This document shows positions 5,583-56,242 of a stretch of 64,000 bases of DNA, piece after piece (positions within the stretch are counted from its first letter, which is position 1; each line of letters opens with the position of its first letter). The notes under the pieces are model-generated. The model did not search any database and had not been told where the DNA came from. It worked only from the letters and a program-made list of their open reading frames with translations. A program made the translations under genes and the position numbers. This stretch comes from Macrostomum hystrix (taxonomy: Eukaryota > Animalia > Platyhelminthes): assembly GCA_950097015.1 (NCBI GenBank), contig CATNEN010000029.1, positions 2,356,001 through 2,420,000 on the forward strand, given 5' to 3'.

Positions 5583-5618
5583 GTTGCCATGGCAACTAAG
5601 ACGCGTTGCTATGGAAAT
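5583..5618. promoter_or_regulatory. Two adjacent RFX X-box-like motifs
   Basis: Perfect palindrome GTTGCCATGGCAAC (5583-5596) followed by GTTGCTATGGAAAT (5605-5618). Confidence 0.4.
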
Positions 5619-26900: not shown

Positions 26901-29900
26901 CAGAGTGGTCAGTGATGTAGAGTTTGAGAACAGAGTGGTTAGTGATGTAGAGTTTGAGAACAGAGTGGGGAGTGATGTAGAGTTTGAGAACAGAGTGGTT
27001 AGTGATGTAGAGTTTGAGAACAGAGTGGGGAGTGATGTAGAGTTTGAGAACAGAGTGGTTAGTGATGTAGAGTTTGAGAACAGAGTGGTTAGTGATGTAG
27101 AGTTTGAGAACAGAGTGGGGAGTGATGTAGAGTTTGAGAACAGAGTGGTTAGTGATGTAGAGTTTGAGAACAGAGCGGGGAGTGATGTAGAGTTTGAGAA
27201 CAGAGTGGGGAGTGATGTAGAGTTTGAGAACAGAGCGGGGAGTGATGTAGAGTTTGAGAACAGAGCGGGGAGTGATGTAGAGTTTGAGAACAGAGCGGGG
27301 AGTGATGTAGAGTTTGAGAACAGAGTGGGGAGTGATGTAGAGTTTGAGAACAGAGCGGTTAGTGATGTAGAGTTTGAGAACAGAGCGGTTAGTGATGTAG
27401 AGTTTGAGAACAGAGCGGTTAGTGATGTAGAGTTTGAGAACAGAGCGAGGAGTGATGTAGAGTTTGAGAACAGAGCGCGGAGGGATATAGAGTTTGAGAA
27501 CAGAGCGGTTAGTGATGTAGAGTTTGAGAACAGAGCGGTTAGTGATGTAGAGTTTGAGAACAGAGTGGTTAGTGATGTAGAGTTTGAGAACAGAGCGGTA
27601 AGTGATGTACAGTGTTTGAGAACAGAGTGGTTAGTGATGTACAGTGTTTGAGAACAGAGTGGTTAGTGATGTACAGTGTTTGAGAACAGAGTGGTTAGTG
27701 ATGTACAGTGTTTGAGAACAGAGTGGTTAGTGATGTACAGTGTTTGAGAACAGAGTGGTTAGTGATGTAGAGTTTGAGAACAGAGTGGGGAGTGATGTAG
27801 AGTTTGAGAACAGAGTGGTAAGTGATGTACAGTGTTTGAGAACAGAGTGGTTAGTGGTGTACAGTGTTTGAGAACAGAGCGGGGAGTGCCAGACGGGTTG
27901 GAGCGTGCACAACAATGTGATCAAATCTCAATTTCCCGCCCGCAGGCAAGCAGCGCTTCGAGCACGCAGCCGCTTTCTTTCTTCTTGGCAACAGCGTGAA
28001 GGACGCCGTTGAAGTTTGCGTGACGAAGCTGCACGATCTGCAGCTGGCGGTTGTGCTGGCCAGGCTGCACGCAGCCGAGGGTGTCCTGATCTCGGACAGC
28101 AATCAGCCTCTGTTCGACCTGCTCAACAAGCACGTACTCAGCCCGACCGGCAAGTACTATCCAAATCCGTTCTACCGCAGCATGGCCCACTGGCTGTTGA
28201 AGGACTACGACCAGGCAGTCAGCACTCTGCTGCTGGGCGAGCCAGACTCGGCCCTGCTAGATCAGTCCAGTCCCAGCGTGTTTAACTACTTCAACTATTT
28301 GAAGTGTCATCCGCTGATTCTGCGCCAGGCTAAGCTGCGCGGCGGCCTCCCAGTTGGCATGGGAGGCGGAGGCGGAGGCGGCGCGGGCGGGAACGCCGTT
28401 GGCGGCGCCAACGCGGAGCGAATGAGCCTGACGGAGCGGCGGCTGTTCTTTCGCACCGCCCACGCCTACTTCCGCCTTGGCTGTCCCAGCCTGGCGCTGG
28501 AGGTGCTGACTCGCCTGCCAGACTATCTGCGACTTGAGTCTACAACTGGTGACGACAAAGACGGTCAACAACAGCTGGAGACAGCAGAACAGCCGCCGCC
28601 ACCGCCGCCTCTCAAAGAGGAAGACAGCTTCCTGTGCTGGAACGACATCGGCACAGTCGCCGACGCAGCGGATGACAGGCCGCCCTCGCTGCATCTAAGC
28701 AGCAGCAGCGATGGCAGCGACGCTGGCGATGATGAAAATGCCAACGGAGATCATGTCGACGGCGGTGGCAATGGAGGAGCGGCTGACGAGACGCCTTCTA
28801 CACTGGCTGCCAACAGTTCTGCCGAGTCGCAACAGCGCGAAGCTTCTCCAATGGTGCTGGATGTGATGACTCACCAGCTGAGATTCGTCGCCTGCCAGCG
28901 GATCATGTCCGAGGAGCTCAGCACCCTGGCCACCGGCTTCGAGGTTGACGGTGGGCAGCTCCGGGCGCAGCTTTACGCCTGGTTGGAGCGCGAGACTGCA
29001 CTGCTGAGGCGTCTGTGCCACTACGGCTGCGCGCCAAATGAGGACGAAAGCTCGATCGCCGCCGCGCCTACAGACGGTTTCGGCGGTCGCAAGGCCAGCC
29101 TAGTTGATCTCGGCGGCTTCGGATCCGCCATCAGTGGAGGAACCCGCTCCAGGCAGAGCAGCTTTCACAGCCGCCTGGACTCGTGGCAGCGCAGGAAGCT
29201 CTGGCTGCGCGACAATGAGCAGCTGTTGCGCACATTGTTGAGCTTCTGCTCACTGCACGGCGCCTCCGGAGGCGGCCTGACCTCGGTGCGCATGGAGCTC
29301 GTACTGCTGCTGCAGGAGCTGCTGCAGGACAATCTGACAGATGCGCCGCTGCAGCTGGAGTCCAAAGTGCCGCTGCCCAATAGTTTGCCTTTGATCAATG
29401 CGGCTGTTAGCAATTTCAAAACTGTCGTAGCCGATCCTATTCGCCAGCTGCAGAATCTCATCGGCGACGTCCTTGGCCAGCTGCGCCGCTGGGCCGCGCC
29501 GCCTGAGCTGCCAGCCAACGCCCAGGAGCTGTTCTTGCTGCGCAGCATCAGCGCGGCTGTGTCCGCCTGCGTGTACCAGTGCCTTGTGGACACCGTCGGT
29601 CCGCCAGGCGATGCCGCAGCCGCTGCCGGATTCACCACTAGCCTGGTCTATGGCGACTATTACTGCTTGATGAGTCGCCTAGCTGGGTCGCGGTCCGATC
29701 AACAGCCCGGACACCAGCAGCTGGGGGCACTGAGGGATGCCTCTGTTTGTGCCTACGGTGCGTCTGTGTTATTTCATTTGCACCTAGTACTTGGTGGCTA
29801 CTCAAATCCCTGAGCTCGATTTGGCGGAGAGAATGCTTGGGGGCTGCTTGTAGGGCTACTTACGCCCATGAGGGCCAACCTTTAAGGCACAGTAAGAGTG

Positions 29901-32900
29901 CACACTTGCCTGGCAATGAAAAAGTGAAGGCAGATGTACACCCCTTGTGACTGTGAACAGTGTTAACAGATACTGGTCTGCGTATGGTATGTGTGCATTT
30001 GTGCTCAGGAGTCAGCGGAATGGGCTGGCTTATTTGCCGCTTTCTGGCTGCTGGTCTACTGTAACCTAGTGATGTGCTGGCAGTGTCCACAGCCCTCAGG
30101 GGTGAGTAGCTGAGTAGTCTAATGCGTTAGCCTATCCCACCAAGGTCTCTGAGCTCGATTCCACGGCGAGGCCAGATTTCATTTAGGTGGCTTGTTGTGC
30201 CATTTACACCCTTAAAAGCCAATCTCCAAGGGCGCAGTGAAAGTGTGCACTACGTTGAGAAACTCGGGGCAGATGTACACACCTGTGTGAGTGTGTGAGT
30301 GTGTGCTCAGGAGTTAGCGGAATCGGCCTCAGTCACGTGTGCACAAATCTCTGCTGCAAATATATATATAAGATTTGAATGACTACAGATTAAAGTATAA
30401 TTAGGACTAGTTTTAATCGCGCAAATTGATTTCTTATTCGCAGATGCCAGTCAGCAGCAGCTGGAGGACTCTGAGGCGCCCAACACTCAGCCCAGCAAAT
30501 GGCCGGGCATTGCGCACCTGCGCAGCCTATTAGAACGGCACAAAGACGACGATGTGCCCAGACTGAACATCATCCTGACGGAGGCCTTTCTTAGTGTCTA
30601 CCTGGCCACCCTGACCTACGGCCTGACAACAGCCAATGCCAAGATTCTTCACCGCCTAACTGCCCGGCCGCTCAACGCCAGCGTCTGGGGCGCAGTCTTC
30701 GGCGGCGGCCTGAAGACAGCGCAGCGGCCTGCTCCAATGCGCATTAGCGACAGCGCCAGTCCCAGGCGGCCGGCGCAGCAGCAGCAGCCGGTCATTCCCC
30801 GCGTCACTGACGAGATGTCCAAGCAGCGCGTTCGTCTCTACTTGACAACTGTCCAAGGCGGTGGGGCCCCGCCTCTGCCACCGCCGCCGCAGACCCAGCA
30901 GCAGCAGCAGCAGATGCCAGTAATGCCATCGCCAACCACACCCAGCAGCGGCGCCGGGGTAGGCGGCAGCCGCGGGTACACGGAGCGCTTTGTACAACCC
31001 CGCGCATCCATCCTGGGCTGCCTGCTGGCCAAACTGCCGCCCGATCCGCGTCAGCCAGCCGGCCAGGCCGCCGACTTCGACTCAGCCAACGCCTCCGAGG
31101 AAGACGTCGACGCTGACGACCCGGATGATGAGCACGCCGATGCTGGCGCGCCAGACGAGATTCCCGGTTTCGGCGGCTCCATGGCTGAGCTAGACGCGGA
31201 CAGATCCTACCGGTCCAGCAGGCAGCTTCGCCAGACGCCGGCTGTTTCCAGGCGGCGCCAGGCGGCTCTGGAGCGGCGCGAATACGCCTGGCTGCTAATG
31301 CGCTGCGCCTGCGTGCGAGTCGCCCTAGACCAGGTAGGCCGCTTCCTGCCCCAGGTCGGCCTGGAGCTGTCCGACCTGCCGGTTGAGTCGCCCGCTCTGT
31401 ACAATGCGGTCAAACGAGTTCACCAGTGGCAGCGCGCCTTCCGCGATCGCCTGCGCCGATACGGTCAGCCTCCTGACGGCTTCCTGTGCGGCGGCGCCTC
31501 CCTCAACGATGATCTGACTGCCCAGCCGGCCCGCCTTCTGATGGAGCGTTACAAGCTGCTGTTGGACGCAGAGCGGACCCCATTCCCAGGCCGCTCCCTG
31601 TCCGATCGGCTCTGCAACCGGCTCTGGGCCCTGCTGCTGCGCAAGGAGGTCGCCCGCGACGTCTTCGCCAAGTTCGCCTTCCCGCCGCCGCCTCCGCCAC
31701 CGTCGTCGGCAGCGTCAAATTCGCGCCAGAGAGCGCCGCCTCGACCGCCGCCTCCGAATGTGTCTAGCGCCGAGCTGACCGAGTCGGCGCCACCGGCCGC
31801 CTCGGACTTGCCCGTAGCTCTGGTGCACGACACAAAAGGTGAAGCCATCAGCAGCTTCTGTCTTAGCCGGGCCAATCAGAACTGTCTAACACTGGCCACT
31901 AGCAAAGAGCTGGTGGAGTTGGACATCTGCGACCTCATGTTGCACCCGTTTGCTTCGCCCGGCCTGGATGACGAAGACGACGGTGGGCCGGCGGCGATTG
32001 TCGCCAGCGGAGGCGGAGGCGGCGGATTTGTTAACGACGCCGTCAGCCAGCTGGACGCTGATCAGTTGCCACGCCTGCTAACTAGTTTCGCCGTGCCCGG
32101 CGTCACCCCGGTGCCGACCCTGACATCCAGTGTCATCAAGGGCTGGCCAGCAAGGCTCATCACGCGGCGCTCTCTGCCAAAGCCGCGGCAGGTAAGACTG
32201 ATGGACTGCGATGCATGTTTATGCGATTGTCACTTCACCGATCTTGCAGTTTTATTAAGTGCTTCAACTGTCCAATATTCTTAGCCAGGTACTTTTGCTA
32301 GCTAATATCCCCCATCCAGATGCTTGAGTTCCTATTATCCCCATCCAGGTAATTTACCACCCTCGTCTTTTAAATCTCGCATCCCATAGGTGGCAGCCCA
32401 CCCGGACCGGCACAATTATTTGTTTGGCTCAGCCAGTGGCGCCATCGACTGCTACGAATGGTCGCACAGGGCCCCCTTAACCAAGCCAGGCAGTGTCAGC
32501 GTCGGCGGCCGCGTCACCGCCCTGCGCTTCAACGCCTACGGCAATCGATTCGCCGTAGGCGACAGCGAGGGCTACGTATCTCTGTGGCACTGGCGCAGCA
32601 TTGTCGGCGGCGCCGGCATGGGCTCCGAGGCGGACCGGCCCTATCGAGTGTGGCGCGGACATTCGCGCGGCTGCTCGGACCTGCAGTTCGCAGGCTGTTC
32701 AACTCTGTACGCTACTGGCGGCATGGGCGCCGAGTCCGAGGCCAACGCCGCACTGTGGGACACCCTGCTGCCGGTTGAAAAGTCCGTAGTGCAGCGCTTC
32801 TTTGAACCGGCTCTGCATGCCGGCTGCACTTCGCTGGCCTACGCGCCTCAGCGTCAGCTGCTGCTGGCCGGCACAGGAAAGGGCGGCGTGGCGCTGCTTG

Positions 32901-36339: not shown

Positions 36340-38760
36340 TTAACCACGAGAAGACTGATGGTAAGCAGTGCTTACCAAGGCCTAATTTTACTTCCTGCCG
36401 GCTTGAGTAGATAGAATTCTATGGTTAAATTGATATTATCGGTTCCTGCCTGCAGTGGTAAGCACAGCTTACCGTGAATATTCTAGATTTTTTTCTGACA
36501 AGCATAAATTTTAAATTGTACATTCTTAATTATGTGTTGTTTGTACATCTCCTTTATAGCTTTTAGTTCAAACATTCTATTTTATTCAAGAAGGCTCTGA
36601 TAAATTTGAATTCCAATATCTTAACTTTCTCGTAGTATTGTAAAAATAACTAAAGAACAAAGAAGAGCATCGAAACAGCCGATACATCTGTCCAATCTAA
36701 CTTACCAGCGCATACAGAGGGTACGACTGGTACACTATGCAGAAACTATAACTAGCAAAACTAGAATAAATAAATAATAGTCATTAACAAATTTAAGCTA
36801 AAGACAAGAGGCAAAAACTGAAAACTTAAGTCATTTTGAGTGTTAAGCTGGTCCATTCTGTCGATACTTCAACGCTGCGAATGCCAACGTTGGAAGCAAT
36901 CGAACAAACAAAGTCCCGGGCATCCTGGACATCGGCTATTTGATATTTGATGAAGGTATTCTGGCCACCACACTTGGAGTACAGAACCCAAGCGTTGCGC
37001 ACCATTTGAAGGCACATATGCAAGCCCAGCTTGTGGAACCATTTTGTTGTTTTTCTGCCGGCGTCATAAGGCTGCAGGGTGCCGTCTAGCTTGTCCACAC
37101 CACCCATGCAGCGATTGTAAGTTAAGACACTGCGGCTCTTCTGCACTGCCACATGTTGTCCAGCTCGATTGATCTTGACTTTCTCGGCCTTTGACGCAAC
37201 GTCCTTCGTGTCCAGCAAATACACGGTCTTGACTCCACTCTGCTTCCTCTCGACAGCCTTCACAATTAGAACTCGTCCCTTCCTCACGAAAGCTACATTA
37301 TTCGGAACCACCACAGCCTGCCGAAGCTGAGCCGGAACTCCTCGGTCTGGCCTCACGGTGCCCGTCAGGAACGTTGAATGGTCAATAAGGAACTGGGATA
37401 ACCTGTATGATGTAAACCAGGTGTCGGTAAATATTCTGTACCCTAGGTCCAGAATGTCATTGGCCAGCTCAGCTACGATTCGCTCGCTGAGAGAAAGATT
37501 TACACAGTCCTGTGTGGAGCCGAACTTCCGATTTTCTTCTGGAGTTGAGTGCACTATGAAATTGAAGAGATAAGCAGACTTGGACTCACACAGACAGTAC
37601 ATCTTCATTCCGGACTTGGCCCGCTTTGTTGGAATGTACTGTTTAAAACGAAGTCGCCCCTTAAACAGTATCAAGGACTCGTCAATGCTCACTTCACACT
37701 CAGGCCTGTAGTTGTTCTTGCAATAAGCTTGCAGCATATTCATAAATGGACGAATCTTGAGTAGTGGATCTGCGCTTGCTTCTTCCCTGCTGTCGTAGAA
37801 GCGCAGAAATGTCAGCAGCTGCTTGAATCTATCGCGAGCTAACGCCTCGGGCTTCTGAAAGTATGGCATGCAGTGAAAATCATCTGTGCTCCAGTAGTCA
37901 TGTAGCTCGGACTTTTTTTTCAGGCCCATGTACAGGTGCATGCCGACTAGCTTTTTCATCTCGCTTGCGGTGCAGTCCCGCCAGCTAGTCAAGATAGGTG
38001 GAAGGACGTCCGTCTCAGGATCCAGCTCCATCAGCATGGTGGCCACCTTGGCGTTCGTCCATTCAGCGAGACGTTGGAAAAGCTCATCAGAAAGGAACAT
38101 TTGTAAAAATAAAGACTTATCCAGCTCAACATTGTCAGGAATTAAAACGTTAGGATTTAGGCCAGCAGTTCCGGTAAATTCAAAACTTTCTGTCCCTTCA
38201 TCGGAGCCAGGCTCGACAAACCGCCAAACATTCTCAACTTCAGCCGCTTCGCCATCTGCGAACTCCTGTCCTTCCTCGCCTTCAGGCTCTTCCATGATTG
38301 GAGGATTGCCATTCAGTGCGTCTTCGATGCCAACCTCCTCACCAGGCTCCTCGTCTATTGTTAAGTAGGAGTCGAGGCTCACTTCACTGTCTGAGGTCAT
38401 GTATTCGATCCCAGAGAGAGAAGCCATGTACTGCAGGTTTTCAGTGAGTACGCTCGTACTGAGAAATTTAGTGAGAAAAGACTAACAAACAAGATGGTCA
38501 GAATATTATTGTAAGAAAGCTTGTCCTACTGTAAAGGGGACTTGCTGCGCACAGATTTCTATGGTAAGCAGCGCATACCAAGCAGGCAGCAAGTGAGACT
38601 GCTTTACTGGCTAAAGGCAGTAGTGCTGCTCATTTCCTTCCCGTCTAGTGCATCAGTTTAAGCCATGCTTGATAGTAAGCCTAGCCGGCAGGAATGGGAG
38701 TGACATGCTATGCCAGAAAATATCTATGGTAAGCACTGCTTACCAAGCAGTCGGAAACAG
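36340..38760 (-). mobile_element. piggyBac DNA transposon
   Basis: TTAA followed by CC at 36340. The 19-bp palindrome TGGTAAGCA-n-TGCTTACCA sits near both ends (36359-36377 and 38727-38745), TTCCTGCCGGCT is shared by both ends, and a transposase ORF lies inside. The exact right terminus is unclear because no TTAA sits at the symmetric position. Confidence 0.85.
36826..38427 (-). CDS. piggyBac-family DDD transposase, C-terminal cysteine-rich domain disrupted
   Basis: 533-aa ORF with an acidic N-terminus, DPLLKIRPF, SIDESLILFKGRLRFKQYIPTKRAKSGMK, FTDTWFTS, YNRCMGGVDKLD and KWFHKL. The catalytic triad is intact. The CRD remnant is in another frame (36931-36869). Confidence 0.93.
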   Translation of the reverse strand: MASLSGIEYMTSDSEVSLDSYLTIDEEPGEEVGIEDALNGNPPIMEEPEGEEGQEFADGEAAEVENVWRFVEPGSDEGTESFEFTGTAGLNPNVLIPDNVELDKSLFLQMFLSDELFQRLAEWTNAKVATMLMELDPETDVLPPILTSWRDCTASEMKKLVGMHLYMGLKKKSELHDYWSTDDFHCMPYFQKPEALARDRFKQLLTFLRFYDSREEASADPLLKIRPFMNMLQAYCKNNYRPECEVSIDESLILFKGRLRFKQYIPTKRAKSGMKMYCLCESKSAYLFNFIVHSTPEENRKFGSTQDCVNLSLSERIVAELANDILDLGYRIFTDTWFTSYRLSQFLIDHSTFLTGTVRPDRGVPAQLRQAVVVPNNVAFVRKGRVLIVKAVERKQSGVKTVYLLDTKDVASKAEKVKINRAGQHVAVQKSRSVLTYNRCMGGVDKLDGTLQPYDAGRKTTKWFHKLGLHMCLQMVRNAWVLYSKCGGQNTFIKYQIADVQDARDFVCSIASNVGIRSVEVSTEWTSLTLKMT

Positions 38761-40260: not shown

Positions 40261-42857
40261 TTAGACGGAGCCCTTAAAAGAGTGATTGAAGAGTACGACA
40301 AACTCTGAAATGGCATTTGGTGAGGTAGAATTTTAAATTGTTAACAAGTTCAATGCTTTTACACGAGCGCGTGATTGAAAACCAATTAAACCACTGGGTG
40401 CCTGAATCTGAGGACCAATTAAACCACTGGGTGCCTGTATCTGAGGGCCAATTAAACCACTGTGTGCCTGAATCTGAGGAACAATTAAACCACTGGGTGC
40501 CTGAATCTGAGGACCAATTAAATCAATGGGTGCCTGAATCTGAGGACCAATTAAACCACTGGGTGCCTGTATCTGAGGGCCAATTAAACCACTGTGTGCC
40601 TGAATCTGAGGACCAATTAAACCACTGGGTGCCTGAATCTGAGGACCAATTAAATCAATGGGTGCCTGAATCTGAGGAACAATTAAACCACTGGGTGCCT
40701 GATTCTGAAGACCAATTAAAACACTGGAGACCTGAATCTGAGGACCAATTAAAACACAGGAGACCTAAATCTGAGGACCAATTAAAACACAGGAGACCTA
40801 AATCTGAGGACCAATTAAAACACAGGAGACCTAAATCTGAGGACCAATTAAAACAAAGGAGACCTGAATCTGAGGACCAATTAAAACACAGGAGACCTGA
40901 ATCTGAGGACCAATTTAAACACAGGAGACCTGAATCTGAGGACCAATTAAAACACAGGAGACCTAAATCTGAGGACCAATTAAAACACAGGAGACCTGAA
41001 TCTGAGGACCAATTAAAACACAGGAGACCTGAATCTGAGGACCAATTGACTCACCTTTGTAGCTGATTCGGCCGTCCTCATTAGTGTCGGCGAAGCGAAA
41101 CATCTCGTCCACCTCGTCGGCAGTGAGCTTCTCGCCGATGGAGGTGAGCACGAACTCCAGCTCCTGCCGGCTGATGTAGCCGTTGCTGTCGCGGTCAAAC
41201 ACCTGAGCGGATTTCATGAGAGAACTAAATACTGGCTTAAACTCGACATCAATAGGATGCCTCTTACCTGAAACGCGGACATAAGCTCGTGGTCCATCTC
41301 GCTGGCCGACTTGAACTTGTAATTCATCTTCATGATGCGAGCGAACTCGTTGAAGTCTATTTTGCCGTCGATCACTAAAAGAATTTTGTGATTGGATTTT
41401 GTCAAGCATCTACGAGCATACTTCTCGTAGTAGATTGGATACGAAGTAACTAGGATACAAACGAAACTATACTGCAACTGTTAAGAAATCCCTGACAAAA
41501 TGCAGTACTTGCTGCGATTCTAGCTGCTGTTCTTGCTGCGATTCTAACTGCAGTTCTTGCTGCGATTCTAGCTACTGTTCTTGCTGCGATTCTAGCTACA
41601 GTTCTTGCTGCGATTCTAGCTACTGTTCTTGCTGCGATTCTAGCTACAGTTCTTGCTGCGATTCTAGCTACTGTTCTTGCTGCGATTCTAGCTACAGTTC
41701 TTGCTGCGATTCTAGCTACTGTTCTTGCTGCGATTCTAGCTACTGTTCTTGCTGCGATTCTAGCTACTGTTCTTGCTGCGATTCTAGCTACTGTTCTTGC
41801 TGCGATTCTAGCTACAGTTCTTGCTGCGATTCTAGCTACTGTTCTTGCTGCGATTCTAGCTACAGTTCTTGCTGCGATTCTAGCTACTGTTCTTGCTGCG
41901 ATTCTAACTACAGTTCTTGCTGCGATTCTAGCTACAGTTCTTGCTGCGATTCTAGCTACTGTTCTTGCTGCGATTCTAGCTACAGTTCTTGCTGCGATTC
42001 TAGCTACTGTTCTTGCTGCGATTCTAACTACAGTTCTTGCTGCGATTCTAGCTACAGGTTTTGCTGCGATTCTAGCTACTGTTCTTGCTGCGATTCTAAC
42101 TACAGTTCTTGCTGCGATTCTAGCTACAGTTCTTGCTGCGATTCTAGCTACAGTTCTTGCTGCGATTCTAACTACAGTTCTTGCTGCGATTCTAGCTACA
42201 GCTCTTGCTGCGATTCTAGCTACTGTTCTTGCTGCGATTCTAGCTACAGTTCTTGCTGCGATTCTAGCTACTGTTCTTGCTGCGATTCTAGCTACAGTTC
42301 TTGCTGCGATTCTAGCTACTGTTCTTGCTGCGATTCTAACTGCAGTTCTTGCTGCAATTCTAGCTGCTATTCTACGAATATAATTTGAAGCTGTGGCTGA
42401 ATCCTCACCAATGACGTCGGCCTCTTTAATGATGCTGTCAATCTCGGCTTTGGTCGGGTTCTGGCCCAGCACCTGGAGGATGTGGCGCAGCTCCTGCGGC
42501 TCAATGTACCCGGACTTGTCCTGGTCGAAGATGGCAAACGCTTCCTGGAGCTCTGCGCCACAGAAAATAATTTTATGGAGTTTTTAATCTTCAAAGCTCG
42601 CACGTGTCGAAAGCTCAGTCTTATCACCTACAGTTTCATGAGGCTCTCACCTCTCACCTGTCGGAAGGTTAATCTTATCACCTACAGTTTCATGAGGCTC
42701 TCACCTGTCGGAGGTCAGTCTTATCACCGGATTCGATTTATTTTCTTATCAGCTGAAATAGTTTCACACCATCATGTAAAGAACGAAAGACAGCCTCACC
42801 TTCGAGCTCTTCGCCGCTAATTTTCAGCGCTTTCATCAGCTCCTGGTTGATCTTCAT
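40261..42857 (-). CDS. Calmodulin-like EF-hand protein, 5 coding exons (42857-42800, 42552-42409, 41374-41268, 41202-41055, 40304-40261), about 166 aa
   Basis: Spliced protein: [166 protein letters not shown]. All junctions are GT/AG and in phase. There is an acceptor at 42878 and a probable 5'UTR exon ending at about 44041 (cag|gtaagc). Confidence 0.9.
40372..41048. repeat. 33-bp minisatellite in calmodulin-like intron 4
   Basis: Unit AATTAAACCACTGGGTGCCTGAATCTGAGGACC grading into AATTAAAACACAGGAGACCTGAATCTGAGGACC. It begins a few nt from the donor site. Confidence 0.96.
41505..42370. repeat. 24-bp minisatellite in calmodulin-like intron 2
   Basis: Unit TTGCTGCGATTCTAGCTAC(T/A)GTTC. Confidence 0.97.
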
Positions 42858-43289
42858 GTCCGCCTCTCTCAGATCACCTGTAGTGAGCGAAGTGGGTGAA
42901 AAAGTGAATTTAACACTGCTCAAACATGCCTTAGTGCTGCTAGAAATTCAGCACATTATTTTTGCAGGGTGCGATAATGAAAATTAATTGATCGTTTTAG
43001 GAGGCCTGGATCTATCCTACATCCGTCCACCCCAACAACTCTCCACCTGCCCTCTCCAGTGGACTTGCTATGTCTTGAGCACTCTGCTCTCACCTAGCTA
43101 CTGCAGTCCAATTGTCTCCATGCGGGCACCTGTCGCCATTCTTTAACAGCGCATTCCTAACCTACCTACCCAACCCACCTTGAGACTCATTGGGCCAATT
43201 TAAAATGCTGAGAATAGTACTCAGTCTTTTAGCCTCTCTACATTGTCTGCTTCTGGGAAATCTATTAGACAGCTCATGGTAAGACGTCA

Positions 43290-44030
43290 GTAATTGGCTT
43301 CACTGGTGTACAGAACTCCTTCTAGACTGTCAGGAATTGGCTTCACTGGTGTACAGAACTCCTTCTAGACTGTCAGGAATTGGCTTCACTGGTGTACAGA
43401 AATCCTTCTAGACTGTCAGGAATTGGCTTCACTGGTGTACAGAAATCCTTCTAGACTGTCAGGAATTGGCTTCACTGGTGTACAGAAATCCTTCTAGACT
43501 GTCAGGAATTGGCTTCACTGGTGTACAGAAATCCTTCTAGACTGTCAGGAATTGGCTTCACTGGTGTACAGAAATCCTTCTAGACTGTCAGGAATTGGCT
43601 TCACTGGTGTACAGAACTCCTTCTAGACTGTCAGGAATTGACTTCACTGGTGTACAGAACTCCTTCTAGACTGTCAGGAATTGACTTCACTGGTGTACAG
43701 AAATCCCTCTAGACTGTCAGGAATTGGCTTCACTGGTGTACAGAAATCCTTCTAGACTGTCAGGAATTGGCTTCACTGGTGTACAGAAATCCTTCTAGAC
43801 TGTCAGGAATTGGCTTCACTGGTGTTCAGAAATCCTTCTAGACTGTCAGGAATTGGCTTCACTGGTGTTCAGAAATCCTTCTAGACTGTCAGGAATTGAC
43901 TTCACTGGTGTTCAGAACTCCTTCTAGACTGTCAGGAATTGACTTCACTGGTGTACAGAAATCCTTCTAGAGTGTCAGGAATTGACTTCACTGGTGTACA
44001 GAAATCCTTCTAGACTGTCAGGAATTGGCT
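43290..44030. repeat. 43-bp minisatellite in the probable 5'UTR intron of the calmodulin-like gene
   Basis: Unit AATTGGCTTCACTGGTGTACAGAAATCCTTCTAGACTGTCAGG. Confidence 0.96.
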
Positions 44031-45029
44031 TGGTGCTTACCTGCAGCTTGCCAGAGAGTGGTGAAATTTGCTGCCCGATGGATTTCAAGGAATGGCGCTG
44101 ATCTGCTTTAGTCAACAATATTAGCCTGAGGCGCTTCTGCTACAAAATTAGCTATAGACGGATCGCCGTAGAATGAACTACGCTGCAAATCTGCGCGAGC
44201 GGTTCTCCTGGTCGCTGTGCAAGCGTCTGCATCCTCTTTACCTGTGCCTCTCATCCCCATCCCTACCTTCAACAGTCCTGTCCGGACAGTCGGAATGGAC
44301 AAAGCGACCTTCAGCGCGAGGCAATCTGTCGGGAGTCGGGTGTACGCTTTAGGGAGACACAAGAACACGCTGAGAGAGGATGTTACCAGTACGGAAATAG
44401 AGAAATGGGAAATGCACGCCGAGGTATAATTGTTTCGCGGGTCGGAAGAAAAAACTGCCGCTGCTGTTGCAGCAAAAGCAGGCCCTATGCGCACGGGATT
44501 ATTTGCCAACGATTCCTGCGTAGATAATTCGCATCACTAAAATGCGCCCCTCCTCCATCTCCTTTTGGGCTTTCTGCGTCAGGAGGCTGCCTCGACCCCC
44601 ACCCTAGCAACTAGCTCTCTCCGTGTCTTTCCTTGCCCCTCGTCAATAATCCGGTTACATCAGGATGCGCCGGCCTCACTAAACGAATCATCAACTGTGG
44701 AGCCTTGCAGATTTTTAGAAGGCGAATTCGCTCGATTTATTATTTTCGAACGATCACTACACTATATATTACTTAAGCGCCCTGGAGGACAGTAGTCAAT
44801 TGCAAAATTATCAGAAAAATGTTCACTTTAAAAAATGTAATTAAAAGGGCAGAGGAACCTTTTATTACTTTTTGTGCAAATTTTTGTGCAAATTTTCTAG
44901 TAAAATGTAACATCACTGTGAATAGTCTAAGTTAGCATTACTCTCCATAGGGATACGACTGTCACAGCTCAAAAAGTGTAACTGTTGAAATAACATCTCT
45001 TATCACTGATGCATCATCTACCCTGTCTA

Positions 45030-45840
45030 TGTCTAATTTCTCATTTTGCCTCTGTCTCTTCCCTGTCTCATCTCTCCCTTATCTTATCTCTCCCCTGTCT
45101 CATCTCTCCCCTGTCTCATCTCTCCCCTGTCTCATCTCTCCCCTGTCTCATCTCTCACCTGTCTCATCTCTCACCTATCTCATCTCTCACCTGTCTCATC
45201 TCTCCCCTGTCTCATCTCTCACCTGTCTCATCTCTTCCGTGTCTCATCTCTCCCCTGTCTCATCTCTCCCCTGTCTCATTTCTCCCCTGTCTCATCTCCC
45301 CTGTCTCATCTCTCCCCTTTCTCATTTCTCCCCTGTCTCATCTCTCCCCTGTCTCATCTATCCACTCTCTTATCACTCCCCTGTCTCATCTCTTTCCTGT
45401 CTCATCTCATCCCTGTCTCATCTCCCCTGTCTCATCTCCCCTGTCTCATCTCCCCTGTCTCATCTCTCCCCTGTCTCATCTCTTTCTTGTCTCATCTCAT
45501 CCCTGTCTCATCTCATCCCTGTCTCATCTCATCCTTGTCTCATCTCCCCTGTCTCATCTCTCCCCTTTCTCATTTCTCCCTTGTCTCATCTCTCCCCTGT
45601 CTCATCTCTTTCCTGTCTCATCTCATCCCTGTCTCATCTCTTTCTGTCTCATCTCTTTCTGTCTCATCTCTTCCCTCTTATCCCTCTTATCTATTCTATG
45701 TCTCAGCGCTCTGCTATTGAATCTCTCTCTTTTCTCATCTCTTCCCTGTCTCATCTCATCCCTGTCTCATCTTTTCCCTGTGTCATCTTTTCCCTGTCTC
45801 CTATTTCCCCTGTGTCTACACTACCCTGTCACATCTCCTC
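45030..45840. repeat. Degenerate pyrimidine-rich microsatellite
   Basis: Variants of CTGTCTCATCTCTCC(C), 13-17 bp. Confidence 0.93.
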
Positions 45841-46564
45841 CCCGTCTCCCCGTCCCCGTCTTATAGTTTCCATCTCACCTCGCTCAAATGCAGTCCCCCA
45901 ATCTATCAATCACATTCAGTTATTTACATTCCTACTGTCCCACGAGACATATAAGGTTGGCGGCCCCGTGATAAACAGATTCGAGTTGAATTGGTGCAGA
46001 TTATAAAAACCGATTTAATACACAGGAAAGCGTGATACCCTAGGCAGAAGTTAGACTCTAAAAATAGCTGCTCATTTAGAGCTCTCTGTACGCTGTCATA
46101 CGTTGAGGTTGAGACCAATTATTAGCCTGTCAACAAGCAGATCTAGCCTACTAGGGGGCAGATGCTAACTTGGGTTCGCTGCTAGGGCAAGGGCGGGGCG
46201 AGCCAGTATAGTTTGTTCTACCGCGTCAGTGTTTAGAAAGCGCCAGTTTTTTGTGGATTGAATCAGCCAATGGTGGGTCGGCTACCCGAAAGCACTAATC
46301 CCAGTCAGCCGGTTCTTGTTGACACACTATTCCCTGCTTGCAGCTGCTTGTTTCTGCTATCTGGATTTTCAGAAATCTAAAAATAGACAAAGCACGTGTC
46401 TTTCTCTTTCACCTCTCCCTGGCCAGGCCAGTCTGGGAAACGGACAACAAAAGATAAGCTGCCTGTGCGTGTAGTGCAAATAGAAAAGCTGGATTCAATT
46501 TCAATTAATAAATGTGTAGGATTTGTGCAACTGTATTGTATCATCCATATTTCTAAGGGAATAA

Positions 46565-46870
46565 TTTCTGTAGATCTAAAGAAAGATTATCTGATGGAAG
46601 AATATCTGCAGATCTGATGGAAGATTGTCTGTAGATCTGATGGAAGATTATCTGATGGAAGAATATCTGTAGATCTGATGGAAGATTGTCTATAGATCTG
46701 ATGAAAGATTGTCTGTAGATCTGATGGAAGATTGTCTGTAGATCTGATTGATGATTGTCTCCAGATCTGATAAAAGAATATCGGTAGATCTGATGGAAGA
46801 TTGTCTGTAGATCTGATGAAAGATTGTCTGTAGATCTGATGGCAGAATATCTGTAGATCTTAGATCTGTA
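46565..46870. repeat. 23-bp AGATCT-containing satellite, left flank of the macro-repeat
   Basis: Variants of TCTGTAGATCTGATGGAAGATTG, the same family as the spacer inside each 2.31-kb unit. Confidence 0.93.
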
Positions 46871-47076
46871 GTAAACAAAATTTAGCAAGAAATAAAATAT
46901 AATAAACTAAAAATGAAGCAGTATTTTGTTATTCAGAATGCTGCATAGATCATGAACTCATTCTGTTCTATTTCAGACAGTTTCGGCATAGGAAACAGGC
47001 TGACGAATAACAAACAGTTGCCCGAGGTCATTCCGTCCACAAAAACACCAGTGCAATCCAGCCCAGTCAAAATGAC

Positions 47077-47083
47077 TATAAAT
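47077..47083 (+). promoter_or_regulatory. TATA box of the repeated mini-gene (also at 49387, 51699, 54011)
   Basis: TATAAAT lies 108 nt upstream of the ATG in each complete unit. Confidence 0.55.
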
Positions 47084-47184
47084 ATGCGCCCTGTCCGATG
47101 CACTAACTCCAACTCTTATTTCAGCGTTAAAGCGTTTCGCCAATTCAGATCCGAAAACAATCAAGCAAAACTTTCAACTGCAAG

Positions 47185-47322
47185 ATGAAGCCCGCCGACA
47201 AGAAAGTAGATGCCGCCGCTGGTGCCAAGCAGCACGACGCCAAGCAGCACGACGCCAAGCAGCACGACGCCAAGGCGCCGCCGGCCCAGGGCCAGCAGTC
47301 CAAACCTGCGCATAAGAAGTGA
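47185..47322 (+). CDS. Putative 45-aa microprotein, copy 1
   Basis: caagATG context; MKPADKKVDAAAGAKQHDAKQHDAKQHDAKAPPAQGQQSKPAHKK*. It is a GC-rich island with codon usage like the DMXL exons (GCC, AAG, CAG, GAC). AATAAA at 47578-47583. Confidence 0.7.
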   Translation: MKPADKKVDAAAGAKQHDAKQHDAKQHDAKAPPAQGQQSKPAHKK

Positions 47323-49494
47323 AGCTCCCGCGCCTGATCGGGATCTACTTTGCACTCGTGTAATTTTCAGCTACTAATTAGTAGTATCTTACAAGTATTC
47401 GTATACTTGGCAACTATTGCCGAATTCTAAACAAATATTAATTCTATATAAATCAGTCAAGCTAATCAGATAAGATCATACAGAAAAGACTGAGTATTTC
47501 ACTGAGGTGCTGATAATCTGTATTCAGTAATTTATTGTGCACCAGGTGATCTGACATTTCCAACGAGTAACCTCTCAAATAAACAATGTACAATATGTAC
47601 CAAGTAGTTCACTAAGTGACTACATCTACTAAAATTTGTGAAGATAAATTCATGTTAGAAACTGAATTCTTTTTTGACTATTCATATGTCAGTGTTTGCG
47701 GCAAATTAGTTAACAGGCAAATATGCATATGATACCTGCATATACCTGCATGAAAACTCAAACGGCAAAACTGCTTGACTTAAAAGCAAACAGAAAGCAC
47801 GCCGTGCCATAGACAAAATAATTGTCTGTAGATCTGATGCAAGAATATCTGTAGATCTGATGCAAGAATATCTGTAGATCTGATGGAAGATTATCTGTAG
47901 ATCTGATGAAAGAATATCTGCAGATCTGATGGCAGAATCTCTGTAGATCTGATGCATGAATATCTGTAGATCTGATGGTAGAATATCTGAAAATTTTTTG
48001 AAAGATTATCTTTAGATCTGATGCAAGAATATCTGTAGATCTGATGCAAGAATATCTGTAGATCTGATGGAAGATTATCTGTAGATCTGATGAAAGAATA
48101 TCTGCAGATCTGATGGCAGAATGTCTGTAGATCTGATGCATGAATATCTGTAGATCTGATGGTAGAATATCTGAAAATTTTTTGAAAGATTGTCTGTAGA
48201 TCTGATGCAAGAATATCTGTAGATCTGATGCAAGAATATCTGTAGATCTGATGGAAGATTATCTGTAGATCTGATGAAAGAATATCTGCAGATCTGATGG
48301 CAGAATGTCTGTAGATCTGATGCATGAATATCTGTAGATCTGGTGGCAGATTATCTGTAGATCTGATGAAAGATTGTCTGGAGATCTGATGCAATAATAT
48401 CTGTAGATCTGAGGCAAGAATATCTGTAGATCTGGTGTAAGATTATATGTAGATCTGGTTGCAGATTATCTGTAGATCTGGTGGCAGATTATCTGTAGAT
48501 CTGATGAAAGATTGTCTGTAGATCTGATGCAATAATATCTGTAGATCTGAGGCAAGAATATCTGTAGATCTGATGCAAGATTGTCTGTAGATCTGATGCA
48601 AGAATATCTGTAGATCTCATAAAAGATTGTCTGTAGATCTGGTGCAAGAATATCTGTAGATCTGGTGGCAGATTATCTGTAGATCTGATGAAAGATCGTC
48701 TGTAGATCTGAGGCAAGAATAACTGTAGATCTCATAAAAGATTGTCTGTAGATCTGATGCAAGAATATCTGTAGATCTGATGCAAGAATATCTGTAGATC
48801 TGATGCAAGAATATCTGTAGATCTGGTGGCAGATTGTCTGTAGATCTGATGCAATAATATCTGTAGATCTGAGGCAAGAATATCTGTAGATCTGATGCAA
48901 TAATATCTGTAGATCTGATGTAAGATTATATGTAAATCTGATGAAAATAGATGTATAGATCTGGTGGCAGATTATCTGTAGATCTGATGAAAGATTGTCT
49001 GTAGATCTGAGGCAAGAATATCTGTAGATCTGATGTATGAATATCTGTAGATCTGATGGTAGAATATCTGAAAATTTGATGAAAGATTGTCTGTAGATCT
49101 GATGAAAGATTGTCTGTAGATGTGATGAAATATACCCATTGGGTTTGATTGTCCCAAGTCTTGCAGCTTATAATTTTTATTGAAAACAAGATAAAGCAAG
49201 AAATATAAAATATAAATTAAAAATGAAGCCGTATTTTGTTATTCAGAATGCTGCATGGATCATGAACTCATTCTGTTCTATTTCAGACAGTTTCGGCATA
49301 GGAAACAGGCTGACGAATAACAAAAAGTTGCCCGAGGTCATTCCGTCCACAAAAACACCAGTGCAATCCAGCCCAGTCAAAATGACTATAAATATGCGCC
49401 CTGTCCGATGCACTAACTCCAACTCTTATTTTAGCGTTAAAGCGTTTCGCCAATTCAGATCCGAAAACAATCAAGCAAAACTTTCAACTGCAAG

Positions 49495-49638
49495 ATGAAT
49501 CCCGCCGACAAGAAAATAGATGCCGCCGCTGGTGCCAAGCAGCAGGACGCCAGGGCGCCGCCGGCCCAGGGCCAGCAGCACGACGCCAAGGCGCCGCCGG
49601 CCCAGGGCCAGCAGCCCAATCCTGCGCATAAGAAGTGA
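49495..49638 (+). CDS. Putative 47-aa microprotein, copy 2
   Basis: MNPADKKIDAAAGAKQQDARAPPAQGQQHDAKAPPAQGQQPNPAHKK*. The frame is preserved relative to copy 1 despite rearrangement of the internal repeats. Confidence 0.7.
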   Translation: MNPADKKIDAAAGAKQQDARAPPAQGQQHDAKAPPAQGQQPNPAHKK

Positions 49639-51806
49639 AGCTCCCGCGCCTGATCGGGATCTACTTTGCACTCGTGTAATTTTCAGCTACTAATTAGTAG
49701 TATCTTACAAGTATTCGTATACTTGGCAACTATTGCCGAATTCTAAACAAATATTCTATATAAATCAGTCAAGCTAATCAGATAAGATCATACAGAAAAG
49801 ACTGAGTATTTCACTGAGGTGCTGATAATCTGTATTCAGTAATTTATTGTGCACCAGGTGATCTGACATTTCCAACGAGTAACCTCTCAAATAAACAATG
49901 TACAATATGTACCAAGTAGTTCACTAAGTGACTACATCTACTAAAATTTGTGAAGATAAATTCATGTTAGAAACTGAATTCTTTTTTGACTATTCATATG
50001 TCAGTGTTTGCGGCAAATTAGTTAACAGGCAAATATGCATATGATACCTGCATATACCTGCATGAAAACTCAAACGGCAAAACTGCTTGACTTAAAAGCA
50101 AACAGAAAGCACGCCGTGCCATAGACAAAATAATTGTCTGTAGATCTGATGCAAGAATATCTGTAGATCTGATGCAAGAATATCTGTAGATCTGATGGAA
50201 GATTATCTGTAGATCTGATGAAAGAATATCTGCAGATCTGATGGCAGAATCTCTGTAGATCTGATGCATGAATATCTGTAGATCTGATGGTAGAATATCT
50301 GAAAATTTTTTGAAAGATTATCTTTAGATCTGATGCAAGAATATCTGTAGATCTGATGCAAGAATATCTGTAGATCTGATGGAAGATTATCTGTAGATCT
50401 GATGAAAGAATATCTGCAGATCTGATGGCAGAATGTCTGTAGATCTGATGCATGAATATCTGTAGATCTGATGGTAGAATATCTGAAAATTTTTTGAAAG
50501 ATTGTCTGTAGATCTGATGCAAGAATATCTGTAGATCTGATGCAAGAATATCTGTAGATCTGATGGAAGATTATCTGTAGATCTGATGAAAGAATATCTG
50601 CAGATCTGATGGCAGAATGTCTGTAGATCTGATGCATGAATATCTGTAGATCTGGTGGCAGATTATCTGTAGATCTGATGAAAGATTGTCTGGAGATCTG
50701 ATGCAATAATATCTGTAGATCTGAGGCAAGAATATCTGTAGATCTGGTGTAAGATTATATGTAGATCTGGTTGCAGATTATCTGTAGATCTGGTGGCAGA
50801 TTATCTGTAGATCTGATGAAAGATTGTCTGTAGATCTGATGCAATAATATCTGTAGATCTGAGGCAAGAATATCTGTAGATCTGATGCAAGATTGTCTGT
50901 AGATCTGATGCAAGAATATCTGTAGATCTCATAAAAGATTGTCTGTAGATCTGGTGCAAGAATATCTGTAGATCTGGTGGCAGATTATCTGTAGATCTGA
51001 TGAAAGATCGTCTGTAGATCTGAGGCAAGAATAACTGTAGATCTCATAAAAGATTGTCTGTAGATCTGATGCAAGAATATCTGTAGATCTGATGCAAGAA
51101 TATCTGTAGATCTGATGCAAGAATATCTGTAGATCTGGTGGCAGATTGTCTGTAGATCTGATGCAATAATATCTGTAGATCTGAGGCAAGAATATCTGTA
51201 GATCTGATGCAATAATATCTGTAGATCTGATGTAAGATTATATGTAAATCTGATGAAAATAGATGTATAGATCTGGTGGCAGATTATCTGTAGATCTGAT
51301 GAAAGATTGTCTGTAGATCTGAGGCAAGAATATCTGTAGATCTGATGTATGAATATCTGTAGATCTGATGGTAGAATATCTGAAAATTTGATGAAAGATT
51401 GTCTGTAGATCTGATGAAAGATTGTCTGTAGATGTGATGAAATATACCCATTGGGTTTGATTGTCCCAAGTCTTGCAGCTTATAATTTTTATTGAAAACA
51501 AGATAAAGCAAGAAATATAAAATATAAATTAAAAATGAAGCCGTATTTTGTTATTCAGAATGCTGCATGGATCATGAACTCATTCTGTTCTATTTCAGAC
51601 AGTTTCGGCATAGGAAACAGGCTGACGAATAACAAAAAGTTGCCCGAGGTCATTCCGTCCACAAAAACACCAGTGCAATCCAGCCCAGTCAAAATGACTA
51701 TAAATATGCGCCCTGTCCGATGCACTAACTCCAACTCTTATTTTAGCGTTAAAGCGTTTCGCCAATTCAGATCCGAAAACAATCAAGCAAAACTTTCAAC
51801 TGCAAG

Positions 51807-51950
51807 ATGAATCCCGCCGACAAGAAAATAGATGCCGCCGCTGGTGCCAAGCAGCAGGACGCCAGGGCGCCGCCGGCCCAGGGCCAGCAGCACGACGCCA
51901 AGGCGCCGCCGGCCCAGGGCCAGCAGCCCAATCCTGCGCATAAGAAGTGA
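51807..51950 (+). CDS. Putative 47-aa microprotein, copy 3
   Basis: Identical to copy 2. Confidence 0.7.
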   Translation: MNPADKKIDAAAGAKQQDARAPPAQGQQHDAKAPPAQGQQPNPAHKK

Positions 51951-54023
51951 AGCTCCCGCGCCTGATCGGGATCTACTTTGCACTCGTGTAATTTTCAGCT
52001 ACTAATTAGTAGTATCTTACAAGTATTCGTATACTTGGCAACTATTGCCGAATTCTAAACAAATATTCTATATAAATCAGTCAAGCTAATCAGATAAGAT
52101 CATACAGAAAAGACTGAGTATTTCACTGAGGTGCTGATAATCTGTATTCAGTAATTTATTGTGCACCAGGTGATCTGACATTTCCAACGAGTAACCTCTC
52201 AAATAAACAATGTACAATATGTACCAAGTAGTTCACTAAGTGACTACATCTACTAAAATTTGTGAAGATAAATTCATGTTAGAAACTGAATTCTTTTTTG
52301 ACTATTCATATGTCAGTGTTTGCGGCAAATTAGTTAACAGGCAAATATGCATATGATACCTGCATATACCTGCATGAAAACTCAAACGGCAAAACTGCTT
52401 GACTTAAAAGCAAACAGAAAGCACGCCGTGCCATAGACAAAATAATTGTCTGTAGATCTGATGCAAGAATATCTGTAGATCTGATGCAAGAATATCTGTA
52501 GATCTGATGGAAGATTATCTGTAGATCTGATGAAAGAATATCTGCAGATCTGATGGCAGAATCTCTGTAGATCTGATGCATGAATATCTGTAGATCTGAT
52601 GGTAGAATATCTGAAAAATTTTTGAAAGATTATCTTTAGATCTGATGCAAGAATATCTGTAGATCTGATGCAAGAATATCTGTAGATCTGATGGAAGATT
52701 ATCTGTAGATCTGATGAAAGAATATCTGCAGATCTGATGGCAGAATGTCTGTAGATCTGATGCATGAATATCTGTAGATCTGATGGTAGAATATCTGAAA
52801 ATTTTTTGAAAGATTGTCTGTAGATCTGATGCAAGAATATCTGTAGATCTGATGCAAGAATATCTGTAGATCTGATGGAAGATTATCTGTAGATCTGATG
52901 AAAGAATATCTGCAGATCTGATGGCAGAATGTCTGTAGATCTGATGCATGAATATCTGTAGATCTGGTGGCAGATTATCTGTAGATCTGATGAAAGATTG
53001 TCTGGAGATCTGATGCAATAATATCTGTAGATCTGAGGCAAGAATATCTGTAGATCTGGTGTAAGATTATATGTAGATCTGGTTGCAGATTATCTGTAGA
53101 TCTGGTGGCAGATTATCTGTAGATCTGATGAAAGATTGTCTGTAGATCTGATGCAATAATATCTGTAGATCTGAGGCAAGAATATCTGTAGATCTGATGC
53201 AAGATTGTCTGTAGATCTGATGCAAGAATATCTGTAGATCTCATAAAAGATTGTCTGTAGATCTGGTGCAAGAATATCTGTAGATCTGGTGGCAGATTAT
53301 CTGTAGATCTGATGAAAGATCGTCTGTAGATCTGAGGCAAGAATAACTGTAGATCTCATAAAAGATTGTCTGTAGATCTGATGCAAGAATATCTGTAGAT
53401 CTGATGCAAGAATATCTGTAGATCTGATGCAAGAATATCTGTAGATCTGGTGGCAGATTGTCTGTAGATCTGATGCAATAATATCTGTAGATCTGAGGCA
53501 AGAATATCTGTAGATCTGATGCAATAATATCTGTAGATCTGATGTAAGATTATATGTAAATCTGATGAAAATAGATGTATAGATCTGGTGGCAGATTATC
53601 TGTAGATCTGATGAAAGATTGTCTGTAGATCTGAGGCAAGAATATCTGTAGATCTGATGTATGAATATCTGTAGATCTGATGGTAGAATATCTGAAAATT
53701 TGATGAAAGATTGTCTGTAGATCTGATGAAAGATTGTCTGTAGATGTGATGAAATATACCCATTGGGTTTGATTGTCCCAAGTCTTGCAGCTTATAATTT
53801 TTATTGAAAACAAGATAAAGCAAGAAATATAAAATATAAATTAAAAATGAAGCCGTATTTTGTTATTCAGAATGCTGCATGGATCATGAACTCATTCTGT
53901 TCTATTTCAGACAGTTTCGGCATAGGAAACAGGCTGACGAATAACAAAAAGTTGCCCGAGGTCATTCCGTCCACAAAAACACCAGTGCAATCCAGCCCAG
54001 TCAAAATGACTATAAATATGCGC

Positions 54024-54379
54024 CTTCTGATGAATGCCTTTTGATGAATGTCTTCTGATGAATGTCTTTTGATGAATGTCTTCTGATGAATGTCTTTTGA
54101 TGAATGTCTTCTGATGAATGTCTTTTGATGAATGTCTTCTGATGAATGTCTTCTGATGAATGTCTTCTGATGAATGTCTTTTGATGAATGTCTTCTGATG
54201 AATGTCTTCTGATGAATGCCTTTTGATGAATATCTTCTGATGAATGTCTTCTGATGAATGCCTTTTGATGAATGTCTTCTGATGAATGTCTTCTGATGAA
54301 TGCCTTTTGATGAATGTCTTCTGATGAATGCCGTTTGATGAATGTCTTCTGATGAATGCCTTTTGATGAATGTCTTCTG
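54024..54379. repeat. 14-bp minisatellite at the truncation point of unit 4
   Basis: Unit TCTT(C/T)TGATGAATG. Confidence 0.95.
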
Positions 54380-55639: not shown

Positions 55640-56242
55640 ATGCAGATCGCCATATCACTGTCGGTAGTACTTCTTGCAGCTGCTGTCAGCCACCTCGCAG
55701 AAGGCGCCGCGATATACGATTGCAGCCAATGCCAGTACTGGGGTAACACTGTCGTGTGCGCCTATAGTAATGGTCAGAGTTACGCCAACGAATGTTACGC
55801 ACACTGTAACGGCGCATCGCCTCCTTACATAAACGGCTACTGCAACAGTGTAGCGACAGCGATCAACTCTAGAAGTGGCTCTTTCAATCCAGTCTATAAT
55901 AATTTAAACAGTAACTATATCGCAAGGAGTGGCTATCCATACAATACGAGGAACAACATTCTCTACAACAATCGGAATGCCCTTTGGTATCCGTACAATA
56001 ACTTCAACCGCTTCAATAACTTCAATAACTTCAACCGGTTCAACAACTTTAATCGCTTCAATCGCTTCTATCGCTTTAATGGCATTCCTAACATTGGCAA
56101 CGCTGGTAGTTGCAACTGCAACAACATGTACTCGCCTGTGTGCGCCAGAATTGGAAACAGTAATGTGCGCAACTCATATCTGAATCAGTGCTTGGCTGCT
56201 TGCTTTGGCGCTTCCATAGTTAACAATGGCCTCTGCACGTGA
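55640..56242 (+). CDS. Secreted protein with two Kazal-type domains and a central Asn/Phe/Arg/Tyr low-complexity region (200 aa)
   Basis: Signal-peptide-like MQIAISLSVVLLAAAVSHLAEG. Six-Cys motifs CSQC...VVCAYSNGQSYANECYAHC...GYC and CNC...SPVCA...SYLNQCLAAC...GLC. Central (NNFNRF)n repeat. AATAAA at about 56565. Confidence 0.9.
   Translation: MQIAISLSVVLLAAAVSHLAEGAAIYDCSQCQYWGNTVVCAYSNGQSYANECYAHCNGASPPYINGYCNSVATAINSRSGSFNPVYNNLNSNYIARSGYPYNTRNNILYNNRNALWYPYNNFNRFNNFNNFNRFNNFNRFNRFYRFNGIPNIGNAGSCNCNNMYSPVCARIGNSNVRNSYLNQCLAACFGASIVNNGLCT

Follow-up and report, generated by a model that had tools for sequence, protein, structure and literature searches.

Within the 64,000-nt stretch of the Macrostomum hystrix genome analysed here (the window, whose positions serve as coordinates throughout), a short tandem array lies at about 46558–54379 and carries, in each complete unit, a small transcription unit with an open reading frame (ORF) of 45 or 47 codons. 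Sequence inspection, Tandem Repeats Finder (TRF), and an exact motif search resolve it into three full head-to-tail units of 2.31 kb (2310–2312 bp), each with a whole transcription unit, followed by the 273-nt head of a fourth. The motif TATAAAT recurs at 47077, 49387, 51699, and 54011 (spacing of 2310, 2312, and 2312 nt), and AATAAA at 47578, 49890, and 52202, or 252–256 nt 3' of the stop codon. This layout of TATAAAT, an ORF opening at caagATG, and AATAAA, with a ~2.31-kb period, had been put forward in an earlier reading of the sequence (the original prediction), and is borne out by motif search and alignment. Each unit joins a unique part of ~1 kb to a 23-bp minisatellite that makes up more than half of the unit, with blocks of 1,307 bp between the unique parts (56.7 copies, higher-order period of 184 bp by TRF). 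Moreover, the left and right junctions of the array are defined and differ from each other. The individual features are as follows.

46558–46860 (+): left-flank block, a diverged version of the 23-bp minisatellite (TRF period 23, 85% matches)
46861–47820 (+): unit 1, unique part with promoter, transcript, and 3' flank (pairwise alignment)
47077–47083 (+): TATAAAT of unit 1 (motif search)
47128–47643 (+): transcript of unit 1, limits carried over from unit 2
47185–47322 (+): ORF 1, 45 amino acids (aa), MKPADKKVDAAAGAK(QHDAK)x3 APPAQGQQSKPAHKK; codon adaptation index (CAI) 0.51–0.61 in the reading frame
47578–47583 (+): AATAAA of unit 1
47821–49127 (+): 23-bp minisatellite block 1 (TRF), private to the locus
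49128–50132 (+): unit 2, unique part (alignment, genome search)
49387–49393 (+): TATAAAT of unit 2
49438–49955 (+): unspliced transcript of unit 2, as seen in RNA contigs of sequencing runs X2, X5, X9, and X10
49495–49638 (+): ORF 2, 47 aa, first ATG of the transcript, A at -3
49520–49693 (+): overlapping +1-frame ORF, 57 aa, R/S/P-rich, CAI 0.20, opened by the second ATG of the transcript with T at -3; not regarded as the product
49890–49895 (+): AATAAA of unit 2, with a variant ACTAAA at 49940–49945, just short of the contig ends
50133–51439 (+): 23-bp minisatellite block 2 (TRF)
51440–52444 (+): unit 3, unique part, same as unit 2 (alignment)
51807–51950 (+): ORF 3, 47 aa, same as ORF 2
52445–53751 (+): 23-bp minisatellite block 3 (TRF)
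53752–54024 (+): unit 4, promoter head only, same as unit 3, breaking off right after the TATA box at 54024, 14 nt counted from the start of the TATA motif (alignment)
54024–54379 (+): unrelated 14-bp satellite that terminates the array (TRF)

Searches of the whole assembly (220,453,370 bases in 42 contigs) with the DNA of the unit, with the peptide, and with the 23-bp repeat gave no other locus, and 94 of the 94 genome matches of the 23-bp repeat fall inside this one. The array is therefore neither a transposon nor a genome-wide satellite. Accordingly, a transposable element or solo long terminal repeat with its own promoter and poly(A) signal was rejected, there being no dispersed copies and a single locus in 220 Mb, as was a genome-wide satellite, all of the 23-bp matches being local. 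What the original prediction had called a satellite is instead a locus-private minisatellite.

How old the array is can be gauged by comparing its units. Of 2,312 bases, a single one distinguishes unit 3 from unit 2, and unit 4, as far as its head goes, aligns as the same sequence as unit 3, in keeping with the recent amplification proposed earlier. The 2,172 nt between the unit 1 stop codon and the unit 2 ATG match the corresponding stretch of units 2 and 3 except for a 4-nt ATTA indel. Unit 1 is diverged in its promoter and ORF alone (46861–47304), by about 2–4% from units 2 and 3. Here, units 1 and 2 are separated by 4 substitutions in 265 nt upstream and by 4 in 114 alignable ORF nt (Fisher P=0.25), and the promoter and the ORF each differ strongly from the 0 substitutions in the 2,172 nt downstream. 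Fast evolution or positive selection specific to the ORF was thus rejected. Because the excess divergence covers the promoter as well as the ORF, it marks an exchange breakpoint or homogenisation boundary, and on the simplest reading unit 1 is an older copy, the 3' part of which has been taken up by a very recent, homogenised repeat of 2.9 units.

A discrete transcript from the unit

A search of sequencing runs with the 1,005-nt unique part of unit 2 as the query returned 13 runs, from four studies, that contain it at least in part. One of these is DNA (84% of sampled words) and may be the assembly's own source, and the remaining runs contain 15–43% of the sampled words, which is about what is expected if only half of the query is present. 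Part of the transcript is also present in a sediment metatranscriptome. Contigs were aligned from four runs (X2, X5, X9, and X10), which represent three studies and three organism labels. In these, RNA-type contigs cover 49438–49955 without a gap and with 0 joints, and none lies on the 310 nt before this stretch (49128–49437) or on the 177 nt after it (49956–50132). Coverage limited in this way, and free of joints, establishes the unit as the source of an independent, unspliced, and abundant RNA of ~520 nt. The earlier prediction of a real transcription unit is thereby supported.

The contigs begin at 49438 (X10) and 49443 (X2), so that the leader seen is 52–57 nt long, and they end at 49941, 49954, and 49955, which is 46–60 nt past AATAAA. 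The X2 contig start at 49443 abuts sequencing-adapter letters, which implies that many fragments end there. None of the RNA contigs shows the poly(A) tail itself, though they otherwise have the form of a discrete transcript. Mean word depth, which in contigs is a poor measure of expression, was 133–442 in X2 and 5,015–9,900 in X5, and the transcript is clearly not a rare RNA.

The RNA contigs also report on sequence variants of the unit. Letters of the copy-1 type (G/G at codons 2 and 8, the KQHDA repeats, the S-K tail, and the additional ATTA) are present in the contigs of all four runs. In organism A (X2), a copy-1-type start (Lys2, Val8, KQHDA) was found at a depth of 298 and a copy-2/3-type middle at a depth of 99, and both genomic forms are thus expressed in this organism. 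In X2, X5, and X9, every 3' part found in the contigs is of the copy-1 type (Ser-Lys tail, additional ATTA). X10 contains an additional, diverged form with a Pro-Asn tail, which carries 7 changes in 188 nt (H29Q, 2 synonymous, H45Q, and 3 in the 3' untranslated region, UTR), and X5 has several short contigs around 49516–49552 that suggest further repeat-number variants. As judged from RNA contigs, in which holes prove nothing, the array probably differs between lines.

With regard to the organisms themselves, runs X9–X12, labelled as organisms B and C, contain the transcript with UTRs identical to those of copy 1, and organism C also carries a form of the Pro-Asn-tail copy with 3.7% divergence. 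Organisms B and C are then either the same species, or sibling species, or the labels differ.

Reading frame and predicted peptide

In each complete unit, caagATG opens either a 45-aa ORF (copy 1, with KQHDA three times) or one of two identical 47-aa ORFs (copies 2 and 3, with a 36-nt unit twice), and the C-terminus PAHKK* is common to all three. The GC content of the ORF is 64.5–68%, as against 35–38% in the leader and 3' UTR, and this GC island coincides with the ORF. Conceptual translation of the three ORFs gives a peptide of A/K/Q/P/D/H together with a few M, V/I, G, S, N, and R, and with no aromatic residue and no Cys, which is the makeup that had been described before. It has a mass of 4.8 kDa, an isoelectric point (pI) of 9.7–9.8, a grand average of hydropathy (GRAVY) of -1.44 (one form) to -1.61, and a content of 15–22% Lys plus Arg, 9–11% Asp, and 6.4% (copies 2 and 3) or 4.4% (copy 1) Gly. 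On inspection, the N-terminus MNPADKKIDAAAGAK contains no hydrophobic core of the kind found in the signal peptides of secreted proteins and neuropeptide precursors. The peptide is predicted to be disordered, for which a single-sequence AlphaFold2 model gives weak support (no secondary structure, predicted local distance difference test of 66, predicted template-modelling score of 0.14). In all these properties the sequence agrees with the small, basic, disordered peptide without a signal peptide that was first proposed. A sperm nuclear basic or protamine-like protein was rejected as an identity, as the frame-1 peptide lacks the very high Lys plus Arg content of such proteins and abundant Arg is confined to the +1 frame, for which support is poor.

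This +1-frame ORF, of 55–57 aa, is found in every unit (47210–47377, 49520–49693, and 51832–52005), 25 nt after the main ATG, and would encode a protamine-like product with a pI of 12. Its codon usage appears non-coding-like and its start context poor.

No homologue of the peptide was found in a word-indexed search of 5.8 billion proteins, nor by exact-product look-ups. When 1.84 billion representatives were searched exhaustively with phmmer, a single match came up (E 5e-4), to an unrelated 738-aa protein of DDKRIPPASFHF repeats, and this sole match is spurious. Likewise, a language-model protein atlas returned no usable match, and Pfam gave no family at E<=0.01 for either frame, with LEA, dehydrin, and other named disordered families unmatched. 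The absence of a recognisable family, as already stated in the original prediction, thus holds across protein searches, atlas, and Pfam. At E<=1, Rfam covariance models (arrays of small nuclear RNA, spliced-leader RNA, and small nucleolar RNA included) found no match in the units. Two metagenome scans, one with back-translated peptide patterns and one with an exact 39-nt word of the 3' UTR, returned nothing, and no literature on Macrostomum micropeptides was found.

The ATG of the ORF is the first of the transcript and has A at -3. In the actin and tubulin genes of the same genome, which we took as the CAI reference set, GC content at third codon positions is 88% and the preferred codons are GCC, AAG, CAG, GAC, CAC, GGC, and CCG. 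The ORF is built from these very codons, and its CAI in frame 1 is 0.41–0.61, against 0.18–0.23 for the other two frames. In composition-preserving shuffles, a CAI as high as this arises with P<0.001, or with P of 0.001–0.008 when each repeat is counted once. Moreover, all length variants in DNA and RNA stay in frame. Codon usage thus favours the frame that had been chosen earlier, and from this sequence evidence translation in frame 1 is likely.

Favoured and rival explanations

We favour, with a probability of roughly 0.7, a small protein-coding gene that is restricted to its lineage (an orphan) and was triplicated in tandem very recently. Several observations weigh against this. The contig 5' ends lie 51–56 nt past the first T of the TATA box, farther than the usual ~30 nt at which the start had been predicted, and contigs can fix neither the start site, nor the cleavage site, nor the strand. 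The PN tail that marks the copy-2/3-type C-terminus is absent from the RNA contigs of organism A, although such holes prove nothing. The GC island is free of stop codons in all three frames, so that an ORF of such length is not in itself unlikely, and the indels are automatically in frame because the repeat units are 15 and 36 nt long. Among the known variants, 6 non-synonymous substitutions stand against 2 synonymous ones, which is about the neutral ratio and, in counts this small, gives no sign of purifying selection on the amino-acid sequence. The exact sequence of the peptide is thus barely constrained, and selection on a peptide, as the original prediction had argued from the kept frame, does not follow from either the substitutions or the indels. 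Our conclusion from these comparisons is that constraint would act on frame and composition, not on exact sequence. Finally, the function suggested below is drawn from composition only and is held with low certainty. The three open frames and the substitution ratio would equally suit an abundant non-coding RNA, its ORF being a chance open frame in a GC-rich minisatellite that is not productively translated, as would the want of a homologue in the protein searches and a region full of minisatellites, several of them with periods that are multiples of three. We nevertheless regard this as unlikely, since the frame-specific fit to the preferred codons of highly expressed genes exceeds the effect of composition, the ORF begins at the first AUG in good context, and there is neither an Rfam family nor another sign of a structured RNA. 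Were the real or an extra product to come by leaky scanning from the protamine-like +1-frame ORF (49520–49693; 57 aa, R/S/P-rich), its greater length than the first ORF, its presence in all copies 25 nt after the first AUG, and its pI of 12 would be accounted for. However, this ORF starts at a second AUG with T at -3, has a CAI (0.20) equal to that of non-coding frames, and runs into the AT-rich 3' part with a hydrophobic tail unrelated to the repeats, all of which makes such a product very improbable.

Still harder to credit is that the ORF belongs to a longer gene as its terminal exon, or is N-terminally extended by spliced-leader trans-splicing, at ATTCAG/ATCCGA (49458/49459). This acceptor-like site is in frame with no stop before the ATG, and 10–20% of M. 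hystrix genes are trans-spliced, with a spliced leader that is thought to end in ATG (PMC10468722). Yet two contigs, X10 record 1 (49438–49552) and X2 record 5 (49443–49499), pass unbroken through the site, the four runs contain neither joints nor spliced-leader-like loose ends, and RNA cover is lacking upstream of 49438; in this respect, the terminal exon that had been named beforehand as an alternative falls away. A different kind of doubt concerns how many near-identical units there are: units 2 and 3 and the head of 4 could be miscounted through an assembly error, with the true array shorter or much longer. The single base difference in 2,312 between units 2 and 3 lends itself to such an error, as do RNA combinations not found in the assembly, namely a copy-2/3 middle with only the copy-1 tail and the short variants around 49516–49552. 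We consider an error rather unlikely, since the M. hystrix assembly was built from long reads and has high contiguity, with 42 contigs for ~220 Mb (PMC10468722), the two array junctions are defined and different, and the RNA derives from other animals, such that the differences may be polymorphism. As for where the gene came from, a doubtful but not negligible proposition is its de novo birth, within an intergenic region dense in minisatellites, from one of these that is in frame and GC-rich; the gene would already give rise to an abundant, codon-optimised mRNA and would evolve mainly by reshuffling of coding repeats and unequal exchange of whole units. If this were true, minisatellite dynamics would both create and tune a functional disordered micropeptide.

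For the orphan gene that we favour, each 2.31-kb unit produces from its own TATA promoter an unspliced ~520-nt mRNA, abundant in whole-animal RNA, whose first AUG would open the codon-optimised, GC-rich ORF of 45–47 codons and yield a basic, extremely hydrophilic peptide of 4.8 kDa. In-frame repeats of 15 and 36 nt would be gained, lost, and reshuffled in the coding sequence, with composition and frame kept as the exact sequence drifts. The array itself probably arose by unequal exchange in the locus-private 23-bp minisatellite, with a homogenisation so recent that almost no differences are left among 2.9 units, and such exchange would alter both the number of units and the number of internal repeats. 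Much more tentatively, the peptide might act in a hydrophilin-like manner, through bulk physicochemical properties in the cytosol or nucleus, and gene copy number might raise its dose.

Known systems, surroundings, and meaning

The closest likeness is to orphan or de novo small-ORF genes, with which this one shares a short, GC-rich, first-AUG ORF, a predicted disordered product, its own promoter, a single locus, fast sequence turnover, and the lack of a homologue in the searches of 5.8 and 1.84 billion proteins. Most young small ORFs are weakly expressed and show no codon adaptation. Unlike them, this gene is abundantly expressed, and its codons are those that highly expressed genes prefer. 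A second likeness is to hydrophilins and small LEA-like protectants, which include yeast Hsp12, Stf2, and Sip18 and the nematode anhydrin: the predicted peptide is likewise small, rich in A/K/Q/D, unstructured, and without a signal peptide, with a GRAVY of -1.4 to -1.6 and high expression of its gene, but it has no sequence or Pfam relation to them. The hydrophilin definition of Garay-Arroyo et al. in 2000 is said to call for a hydrophilicity index >1 and a Gly content >6%; by these values, the hydrophilicity is reached, and the Gly content only by the 47-aa form. Lastly, there are gene-bearing macrosatellites and tandem arrays such as D4Z4/DUX4, RS447/USP17, TSPY, and the histone arrays. In common with these, the array has kb-sized head-to-tail units with a promoter, an intronless ORF, and a polyadenylation signal, and the near-identity of its units points to homogenisation by unequal exchange. 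It differs from them in having only about three units, in that the internal 23-bp minisatellite fills over half of each, and in that the ORF would specify an orphan peptide of 45–47 aa, not a conserved protein.

Elsewhere in the window, a run of long open frames at ~14976–32284 (+) with WD40 and Rav1p_C matches presumably represents the exons of a DMXL/rabconnectin-3-type gene (DMXL/Rav1-type WD40); one of its frames (25945–27651) matches pentapeptide-repeat profiles, probably through a repetitive low-complexity stretch. An intact 533-aa ORF of a piggyBac-type transposase lies at 36826–38427 (-; DDE_Tnp_1_7, E 7e-67). Upstream of the array, five distinct minisatellite arrays of 0.1–0.9 kb each occupy 5.5 kb (40381–45848), with periods of 33, 24, 54, 43, and 16 bp. 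Downstream, a 200-aa ORF at 55640–56242 (+) combines a signal peptide with two Kazal-like Cys modules that flank an Asn/Phe/Arg-rich repeat (NNFNRF...), and it has no Pfam match at E<=0.01.

In our view, the array holds an expressed, tandemly amplified orphan micropeptide gene, for which translation is likely from its codon usage, and is a sound, if fairly ordinary, case of a small gene that is young and lineage-specific. Small ORFs of fewer than 50 codons are routinely left out of annotations. Here, such an ORF lies on an abundant transcript and has coding-type codon usage, in a flatworm that serves as a model of reproduction and regeneration. The value of the locus is that of a clean, testable example and a correction to the annotation, and it overturns nothing known. 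If the peptide is made, it would offer an accessible case for how a very young, disordered micropeptide, unconstrained in sequence, serves at high dose, and for how coding minisatellites together with tandem unit exchange shape genes.

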